Source of the DNA: Aplysia californica
Lineage: Eukaryota
Direction: 5' to 3'
Assembly: GCF_000002075.1 (NCBI RefSeq)
Contig: NW_004797470.1
Coordinates: forward strand, 899,491 to 963,490
Length of the DNA: 64,000 nucleotides
Shown here in pieces: positions 3,192-63,967 of this stretch (position 1 is the first letter of the stretch; each line of letters begins with the position of its first letter). Under the pieces are notes generated by a model. That model ran no database searches, was not told the origin of the DNA, and saw only the letters and a list, made by a program, of their open reading frames with translations. The translations under genes and the position numbers were made by a program.

Positions 3192-3263
3192 TTAAGCTTC
3201 GGAGTTGCCCTCACTATAGAGAGGGTTATCCAAGGACATGGTTGCTCCTGTCATCTTCAGGTT
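3192..3263 (-). CDS. Exon 47: last coding exon ([23 protein letters not shown])
   Basis: Pyrimidine-rich tract plus cag; second NPxY; TAA at 3192-3194. Confidence 0.85.
   Translation of the reverse strand, partial: NLKMTGATMSLDNPLYSEGNSEA

Positions 3264-63967: not shown

Follow-up and report, generated by a model that had tools for sequence, protein, structure and literature searches.

A probable single gene for a very long MAM/LDLa membrane protein with an NPxY tail in Aplysia californica

The minus strand of a 64,000-nucleotide (nt) stretch of the Aplysia californica genome (contig NW_004797470.1, here contig C200; G000:C200:899491-963490) encodes the C-terminal part of a membrane protein composed of MAM and LDLa modules. 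This whole stretch is referred to as the window, and extended window coordinates continue the same numbering past position 64000. Together with the upstream part of the contig, the window probably forms one very large MAM/LDLa membrane-protein gene. The complete array contains 65 MAM and 15 LDLa modules arranged head to tail on the minus strand, with the MAM modules distributed over ~190 kb. The gene model spans 203 kb, with ~165 exons that encode 11,470 visible residues, and the window represents the 3′ 46% of the gene. In its fullest form, the reading considered likely is that of a single type-I protein of ~11,500-12,000 amino acids, specified by one of two genes that were duplicated en bloc. 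Its MAM-only run would have grown to 39 modules and its core formula would have been kept from chelicerates to molluscs. The protein would form a filament of a few hundred nanometres with an NPxY/PDZ-type tail and act in a megalin-like uptake system or a surface-barrier system.

The MAM profile was seeded with one domain of a giant exon and iterated on the six-frame translation, LDLa modules were counted by the same procedure, and the profiles were also run on the rest of contig C200. In the window, the MAM profile gives 53 matches, all 53 on the minus strand, which tile into 27 modules, the first of them clipped at the window edge (63974). The window also holds 15 LDLa modules, 14 solid and one degenerate. 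These counts agree with a first-pass annotation of the window, which had reported at least 27 MAM and 15 LDLa domains, and they have Pfam support. The coding length of the window, ~5,327 amino acids, likewise bears out the earlier figure of more than 5,300. As a measure of the protein, that annotation was right to call it very long, but its 27 MAM modules and 5,300 amino acids underestimate the 65 MAM modules and ~11,500 amino acids of the whole more than two-fold.

The MAM series continues unbroken past the window to 203013 (extended coordinates), and the N-terminus lies outside the window, as the first-pass annotation had stated. The profile search found no MAM or LDLa module in the 23 kb beyond the stop codon, nor from 203013 to the contig end. 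A candidate signal-peptide exon precedes the first MAM exon by ~3.6 kb and encodes Met, Arg, a Leu run, and Ala-Val-Thr. Its ATG lies at 206621 or 206600 (extended), ~142.6 kb beyond the window's upper edge. The exon ends G/GTAAGA in phase 1, and the acceptor of the first MAM exon is also phase 1. A long (ATT)n microsatellite directly follows the donor of this candidate first exon (~206440-206520, extended). No second signal-peptide-like exon was found inside the array.

From the N-terminus, the module order is M39, (L-M-L-M-L-M7)x2, (L-M)x8, L, EGF, and a transmembrane (TM) segment, where M is MAM and L is LDLa. A search for splice sites and phases shows that modules occupy ~3 exons each, that exon phases are conserved, and that 44 of 51 inter-module introns are in phase 1. 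Exceptions occur mostly where an exon was missed or falls in a gap of undetermined bases (N gap). Module pieces that were initially missing were recovered in the right order at a relaxed threshold or coincide with N gaps. The single signal-peptide candidate, the single tail, the even spacing, and the phase-1 boundaries throughout all support one gene. There is no start- or stop-like feature at the transition from MAM-only to LDLa-containing modules, and a single transcript across the whole array is considered probable. These observations establish the identity and anatomy of the gene.

Pfam provides an independent reading of the modules. The long open frames of the window, whose G+C content is 42%, lie on the minus strand and include frames of 1,993 and 1,178 codons. 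The 1,993-codon frame contains 10 MAM and four LDLa modules and the 1,178-codon frame contains six MAM and four LDLa modules, with MAM (PF00629) scores of 1,147 and 425 bits on the two giant exons. Curated Pfam models also call MAM and LDLa (PF00057) on single exons in the intron-rich part of the window and on exons outside it. The Pfam check that the first-pass annotation had proposed thus confirmed both domains on the giant frames and on single exons. Across the 3,171 residues of the giant exons, Pfam detects only MAM and LDLa and no YWTD β-propeller/EGF-precursor unit (PF00058). The remaining exons of the chain are all MAM or LDLa, with linkers of ~15 residues or shorter. All 15 LDLa modules of the window are solitary between MAM modules, without consecutive LDLa clusters, and 14 of the 15 retain the acidic calcium cage.

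A paralogous gene occupies ~299000-555500 on the plus strand of contig C489. Its annotated product P0121 (XP_035827620.1, Aplysia californica) is encoded by this contig at 100% identity over 1,637 and 994 residues, which identifies the genome as that of A. californica. P0121 is 46% identical to the window's protein over 1,156 residues and is collinear with it, tail included. Its 20 modules correspond to modules 46-65, with 18 reciprocal best matches and a rank correlation of 1.0. The MAM-only model P0021, also from C489, corresponds to modules 8-26, with 16 reciprocal best matches and the same rank correlation of 1.0. Both RefSeq models begin or stop in mid-domain, and because of this truncation they are fragments. 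Exon probes for modules 9, 15, 22, and 31 match the plus strand of C489 at 336.0, 375.0, 413.2, and 457.7 kb, respectively. The giant exon of C489 lies beyond these probes at 543-555 kb, and further matches extend down to 299 kb. The whole module array appears to have been duplicated as one block that both copies kept. The first-pass annotation had expected automated annotation to fragment the gene, which is correct for the C489 paralogue with its models P0021 and P0121; for the C200 locus it amounts only to the fact that no giant-exon model turned up.

The two loci share a candidate EGF-like module, stalk, TM, and tail in the same order as well as a giant 3′ exon, and the C489 tail carries NNPIY, EPPS, ENPMY, and a terminal -SDA. 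Unlike the C200 gene, the paralogue has a giant open frame of 3,252 codons that corresponds to the two C200 giant exons fused; the 934-nt intron at 19160-18227 is present at C200 and absent in C489. The paralogue also differs in being a separate locus with a longer stalk that is annotated only as truncated pieces.

The modules of the array are old. Identity between MAM modules has a median of 32% and a maximum of 55%, all modules are open, and 40 of the 65 contain exactly four cysteines. An assembly artefact or a recent tandem expansion is ruled out by the median identity of only 32%. Because the modules are old yet all open, the array is neither an artefact nor decayed, and its modules are old copies maintained by selection. 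Pairwise identity among the 39 N-terminal MAM modules follows a weak but significant period of three (0.359 vs 0.339, p = 3e-4), which hints at growth by three-module units. Intron loss in the gene is strongly 3′-biased: modules 49-65 lie in exons of 5,960 and 3,373 nt (14854-25120), and the modules upstream have ~3 exons each (27528-63974). The giant exon is common to the paralogue and to the 52-54% identical relatives P0003 and P0013, which indicates that the intron loss is old.

A homologue search returned 566 matches, many of them named, with lengths that pile up at the upper length limit of the search. A length-unrestricted search of 1.8 billion representative proteins was made with the 1,178-amino acid exon, and its 150 best matches were considered. 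Relatives in this search measure 4,000-7,512 amino acids and include proteins from Pycnogonum litorale (7,512), Ornithodoros (6,419), Octopus vulgaris (6,043), Saccoglossus (6,049), and Aplysia californica (4,187). Several of the long relatives (6,000-7,500 amino acids) are full-length, with a signal peptide as well as an NPxY-bearing TM tail. Read as one protein, the Aplysia product would exceed every family member in these 150 matches ~1.5-fold in length.

The tail type is widespread in this family. Of 109 TM-bearing homologues, NPx[YF] occurs in 45 and NPxY or NxxY in 93; the C-terminus of 40 is [ST][DE] followed by a small or hydrophobic residue. Motif by motif, the C200 tail can be aligned with those of gastropods and Aplysia, and a single TM helix followed by a short tail that has NPxY or NxxY and an S-[DE]-A-type terminus is common to mollusc, annelid, rotifer, chelicerate, and fish members. 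Judged by its modules and tail, the gene is best classified as an exceptionally long member of the MALRD1/MLRP family and not as a new class of system. Fusion of a MAM-only run to an LDLa part is normal in the orthologous group, and the run appears to have grown here to 39 modules. Individual modules could not be matched as orthologues to those of the octopus, sea-spider, tick, and acorn-worm proteins, which are too diverged and not collinear.

Read in gene order, all features of the window lie on the minus strand. MAM39 (61733-63974) is the first module and has exons at ~63967-63804, 63063-62863, and 61820-61733, supported by the profile, by splice phases, and by a Pfam MAM call on 63792-63974. 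Its first exon lies beyond the window at ~64926-64761 (extended coordinates). An intron of MAM39 contains, at ~63047-63418, an interspersed repeat of which at least 40 copies, 75-81% identical, are scattered over many contigs. The LDLa1 exon (60689-60802) is phase 1 at both ends and contains the degenerate module at 60800-60690, which scores 19.7 bits against a Pfam cut-off of 24.1 and has lost its acidic calcium cage. It is followed by MAM40 with four exons (58191-60382; MAM profile and splice pairs), the LDLa2 exon (57500-57619; profile, Pfam 42.4 bits), and MAM41 with four exons (53046-56043; profile and splice pairs), the third of which ends next to the N gap at 53709-54019. The LDLa3 exon (51912-52061; profile, Pfam 34.1 bits) precedes MAM42-48 (27528-49547), which have ~3 exons each and no LDLa between them. 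MAM42-48 are called by the profile and by Pfam on 41942-42250, 30684-30959, and 46497-46730. Within this block, single exons at 41278-41009 and 29035-28787 each contain an inter-module boundary, and the last exon also holds the first half of LDLa4. LDLa4 is complete, yet an intron splits it across two exons.

One exon (25992-26330; LDLa profile and splice pairs) combines the remaining half of LDLa4 with the first part of MAM49. Giant exon 1 (19161-25120; 5,960 nt, with the 1,993-amino acid open frame and Pfam calls) contains the end of MAM49, LDLa5, MAM50, LDLa6, MAM51-57, LDLa7, MAM58, LDLa8, MAM59, LDLa9, and the start of MAM60. Giant exon 2 (14854-18226; 3,373 nt, from its open frame and Pfam) continues with MAM60, LDLa10, MAM61, LDLa11, MAM62, LDLa12, MAM63, LDLa13, MAM64, LDLa14, and the first part of MAM65. 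It ends with the donor CAG/GTGAGT at 14854/14853 and is joined from 14854 to 13852 on homology to P0121. The last exon of MAM65 (13611-13852) is 58% identical to P0121 and is called as MAM by Pfam. The LDLa15 exon (12673-12818; Pfam 43.2 bits) has a phase-2 acceptor and a phase-1 donor, A/GTAAGC. Between the LDLa15 and EGF exons, the intron contains a tandem duplication of ~795 bp at ~10420-12200, in which the same peptide strings reappear 795 positions apart.

The membrane-proximal and tail exons were read base by base and cross-checked by local tblastn with P0121, and exon phases agree at every readable tail junction. The first EGF-like exon (9562-9615) reads C-x3-C-x5-C, matches the P0121 EGF in position, and is truncated by the N gap at 9342-9561. 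This gap takes ~4-5 codons of the exon, including the fourth cysteine, as well as its donor, and the frame at this exon is for that reason not verifiable. The next exon (8063-8223; phase-2 acceptor, phase-1 donor) contains the end of the EGF-like module (C-x8-C) and a 43-residue stalk, putatively of O-glycan type, in which 23 of the 43 residues are Ser, Thr, or Pro. The EGF-like module is a candidate called from its cysteine pattern, and Pfam gives no EGF even in annotated P0121.

The TM exon (6720-6816) encodes 23 hydrophobic residues followed by RKTNR and is 57% identical to the P0121 TM, with a phase-1 acceptor and a phase-2 donor. A (CT)n run lies just upstream of its acceptor at 6870-6960. 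A decayed copy of the start of the TM exon, with 32 nt between AG and GTGAGC, is present at 7042-7073 on the minus strand. This copy is probably a dead pseudo-exon that is not used, because its length would break the phase between stalk and TM.

Cytoplasmic exon 1 (5819-5900) contains the first NPxY motif, LTNPVY, by base reading and P0121 alignment. It has an alternative acceptor 12 nt upstream at 5912, and its donor GTAAGC lies 13 nt ahead of an N gap. Cytoplasmic exon 2 (4825-4887) is phase 0 at both ends and encodes the conserved EIEPPTF. The last coding exon (3192-3263) contains the second NPxY motif, LDNPLY, and the C-terminal -SEA, with the stop codon TAA at 3194-3192. The cytoplasmic tail therefore has 77 residues, two NPxY motifs, and a -SEA end. 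The TM segment and NPxY tail named in the first-pass annotation are thus found in the TM exon at 6816-6720 and in LTNPVY and LDNPLY, and the motif is spread among the 109 TM-bearing homologues.

The window contains 12 N gaps. Those at 12475-12602, 8413-8599, 7263-7407, 5673-5805, and 5314-5595 are intronic under the gene model, and for 12475-12602 and the pair spanning 5314-5805 the P0121 alignment continues with no residue missing. The gap at 7263-7407 could conceal one more short stalk exon.

Reads from sequencing runs were placed on 6745-12744 only, a segment that includes the junction from 12673 to 9615 and four N gaps. Runs X1 and X5 were tried as RNA and rejected, since their depth is flat over introns and their contigs are unspliced across the 12673 donor and across the exon at 8223-8063; both are genomic DNA runs that contain the gene. 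X8 and X9 are poly-A RNA runs whose tissues of origin are not known, and their reads in this segment fall only on high-copy intronic repeats. By sequence, the junctions from 25992 to 25120 and from 12673 to 9615 are the best splice pairs. The read check on the latter neither supports nor refutes it, as the two poly-A runs have no exon reads and the others are DNA. Very high-copy interspersed repeats occupy the introns at 7745-8144 and 9945-10144, with a summed word depth of ~10^6 in the DNA runs. Poly-A RNA reads on these repeats have loose ends in A/T runs and strand-switch joints, which suggests that the repeats are expressed SINE-like (short interspersed nuclear element) or other mobile elements.

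Based on this architecture, it is hypothesized that the gene encodes a type-I protein at the apical or outer cell surface. The calcium-caged LDLa modules, intact in 14 of 15 cases, would bind ligands as they do in the LDL receptor, and the long MAM chain would extend the ectodomain and may self-associate or contact the matrix. The two Leu-x-Asn-Pro-x-Tyr motifs would recruit PTB-domain clathrin adaptors for internalisation and recycling, and the conserved S-[DE]-A end, a candidate PDZ ligand, would serve apical scaffolding. The multiligand function proposed in the first-pass annotation may apply to such a protein, and its idea that MAM spacers replace the propellers of megalin amounts to an analogy.

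Several observations weigh against a single expressed gene with an uptake role. Neither poly-A RNA run, X8 or X9, yielded a read on the LDLa15, EGF, stalk, or TM exons. The whole gene contains 22 N gaps (11 kb); the EGF exon is interrupted by one of them, and modules 1, 9, 12, and 22 are partly unread. In the paralogue, exon probes detected nothing that matches the signal-peptide exon or module 2. An annotated protein containing either giant exon did not turn up in the homologue searches, and RefSeq has separate models for the paralogue, though both are visibly truncated. Collinear paralogues are no proof of one transcript, because block duplication copies neighbouring genes too. One rival reading is a division into two or more genes, with an upstream secreted MAM-only gene (modules 1 to ~39) and a downstream receptor gene that begins around LDLa1, not far from the window's upper edge. 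Such a division is considered improbable. It draws on the switch from MAM-only to LDLa-containing architecture at module 39, on the separate MAM-only (P0021) and MAM/LDLa (P0121) proteins of the paralogous locus in RefSeq, on MAM-only proteins of more than 3,000 amino acids in databases (P0123), and on the lack of RNA junction reads in the two poly-A runs. However, P0021 and P0121 are mid-domain fragments and so provide no evidence for two genes, and near module 39 there is no signal-peptide-like exon, stop-ended module, or wider spacing. The junctions from 66293/65321 to 64926 and from 61733 to 60802 resemble all others. Full-length sea-spider and tick proteins fuse a MAM-only run to the same LDLa part, and coral and Nematostella tandem MAM/LDLr gene models that had been split by annotation were then shown to be single genes (PMC4890752). 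It is far less probable still that the C200 locus is a silent or decaying, non-expressed duplicate of the C489 gene. The zero tail-exon reads in the poly-A runs, the failure to find an annotated protein for the locus, and the decayed TM-exon duplicate nearby would agree with a silent copy, but the two RNA runs stem from unknown tissues. The open frames of 1,993 and 1,178 codons, ~160 further stop-free exons, and intact splice sites and phases contradict decay, as do cysteines and calcium cages conserved at only 46% paralogue identity. This divergence with intact frames implies long purifying selection.

For the single large gene, the question of function is divided between uptake and structure. 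An endocytic function, predicted from the sequence, is evenly poised between acceptance and doubt. A possible though less favored alternative is that the same gene encodes mainly a structural or adhesive surface protein, such as a glycocalyx, mucus, or matrix anchor that is possibly shed, in which the tail would serve apical sorting and turnover. The adhesive and oligomerising activity of MAM domains in meprin, RPTPmu, and neuropilin counts in favor of a structural role, as do the 65 MAM modules compared with only 15 LDLa modules and the 39-module run without LDLa. Relatives occur in the coral skeletal matrix and in octopus skin mucus (PMC4890752, PMC7115838, PMC11431876), and their presence points to matrix roles over uptake and weighs on the endocytic side of the proposal. 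Conversely, the ligand-binding calcium cage is kept in 14 of 15 LDLa modules, the two conserved Leu-x-NPxY motifs resemble the internalisation signals of LDLR and megalin, and MAMDC4 and MALRD1 act in endocytic intestinal epithelium (PMC8804323, PMC5756061, PMC5112496). By analogy, the biology of MALRD1 and MAMDC4/endotubin fits an epithelial uptake role. The uptake and matrix roles are not mutually exclusive.

The family is listed in many invertebrate expression, mucus, and skeleton surveys, while worked-out function is available only for mouse Diet1 and endotubin. A literature search found the family named in lists and found no description of the Aplysia gene, its module formula, or its tail. 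The locus shows that both the module formula of the family and its tail, with two NPxY motifs, are conserved, the formula deeply so, and that its members can reach ~11,500 amino acids. Annotation of Aplysia, a neurobiology model, fragments or misses such genes, a concern for proteomics and expression studies in which the pieces are counted as separate genes. As a receptor for apical uptake or at the surface of invertebrate cells, the gene is a concrete candidate.

The closest full-length counterparts are the chelicerate proteins CAM1320644 of Pycnogonum litorale (7,512 amino acids) and XP_064478697 of Ornithodoros (6,419 amino acids). Both have a signal peptide, for which the Aplysia gene has the candidate exon, and share with that gene a MAM-only run, the (L-M-L-M-L-M7)x2 block, an L-M run, a TM segment, and an NPxY tail. 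Their MAM-only runs contain 11 and 9 modules, respectively, directly after the signal peptide, whereas the Aplysia run contains 39, and identity is ~30%. Coral and sea-anemone MLRP proteins are also very long MAM/LDLa arrays, and they carry EGF and TM (PMC4890752). Unlike the Aplysia gene, coral MLRP contains additional fibronectin and trefoil domains and is found in skeleton extracts.

Vertebrate MALRD1/Diet1 is a type-I membrane protein of enterocytes with MAM and LDLa repeats, specifically nine MAM and nine LDLa modules in 236 kDa (PMC8804323). The likeness to MALRD1/Diet1 and to the coral giants that the first-pass annotation had drawn holds. Fish proteins named MALRD1 resemble the Aplysia tail: they have a TM segment and NxLY and terminate in -SSDA or -SSEA. 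In contrast to the Aplysia protein, MALRD1/Diet1 is about one fifth of its size and functions in FGF15/19 production in enterocytes, a role with no known mollusc counterpart. MAMDC4/endotubin is likewise a type-I protein with MAM and LDLa modules and resides in the apical endosomes of highly endocytic neonatal ileum enterocytes (PMC5756061, PMC5112496). It is much shorter than the Aplysia protein and has other tail signals.

LDLR, LRP1, and LRP2/megalin share with the Aplysia protein calcium-caged LDLa modules, a single TM segment, and hydrophobic-x-NPxY motifs. The C-terminus of megalin, S-E-V, is a PDZ ligand similar to -SEA. The LDLR family contains YWTD/EGF units and clustered LDLa modules, whereas the Aplysia ectodomain is mostly MAM and its LDLa modules are solitary. 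Because it has no YWTD propeller and no LDLa clusters, the gene does not belong to the LDLR family, and the likeness is confined to the tail. The megalin-style label of the first-pass annotation accordingly fits the tail motifs only and does not extend to an ectodomain with solitary LDLa modules and without a YWTD propeller or EGF-precursor unit.

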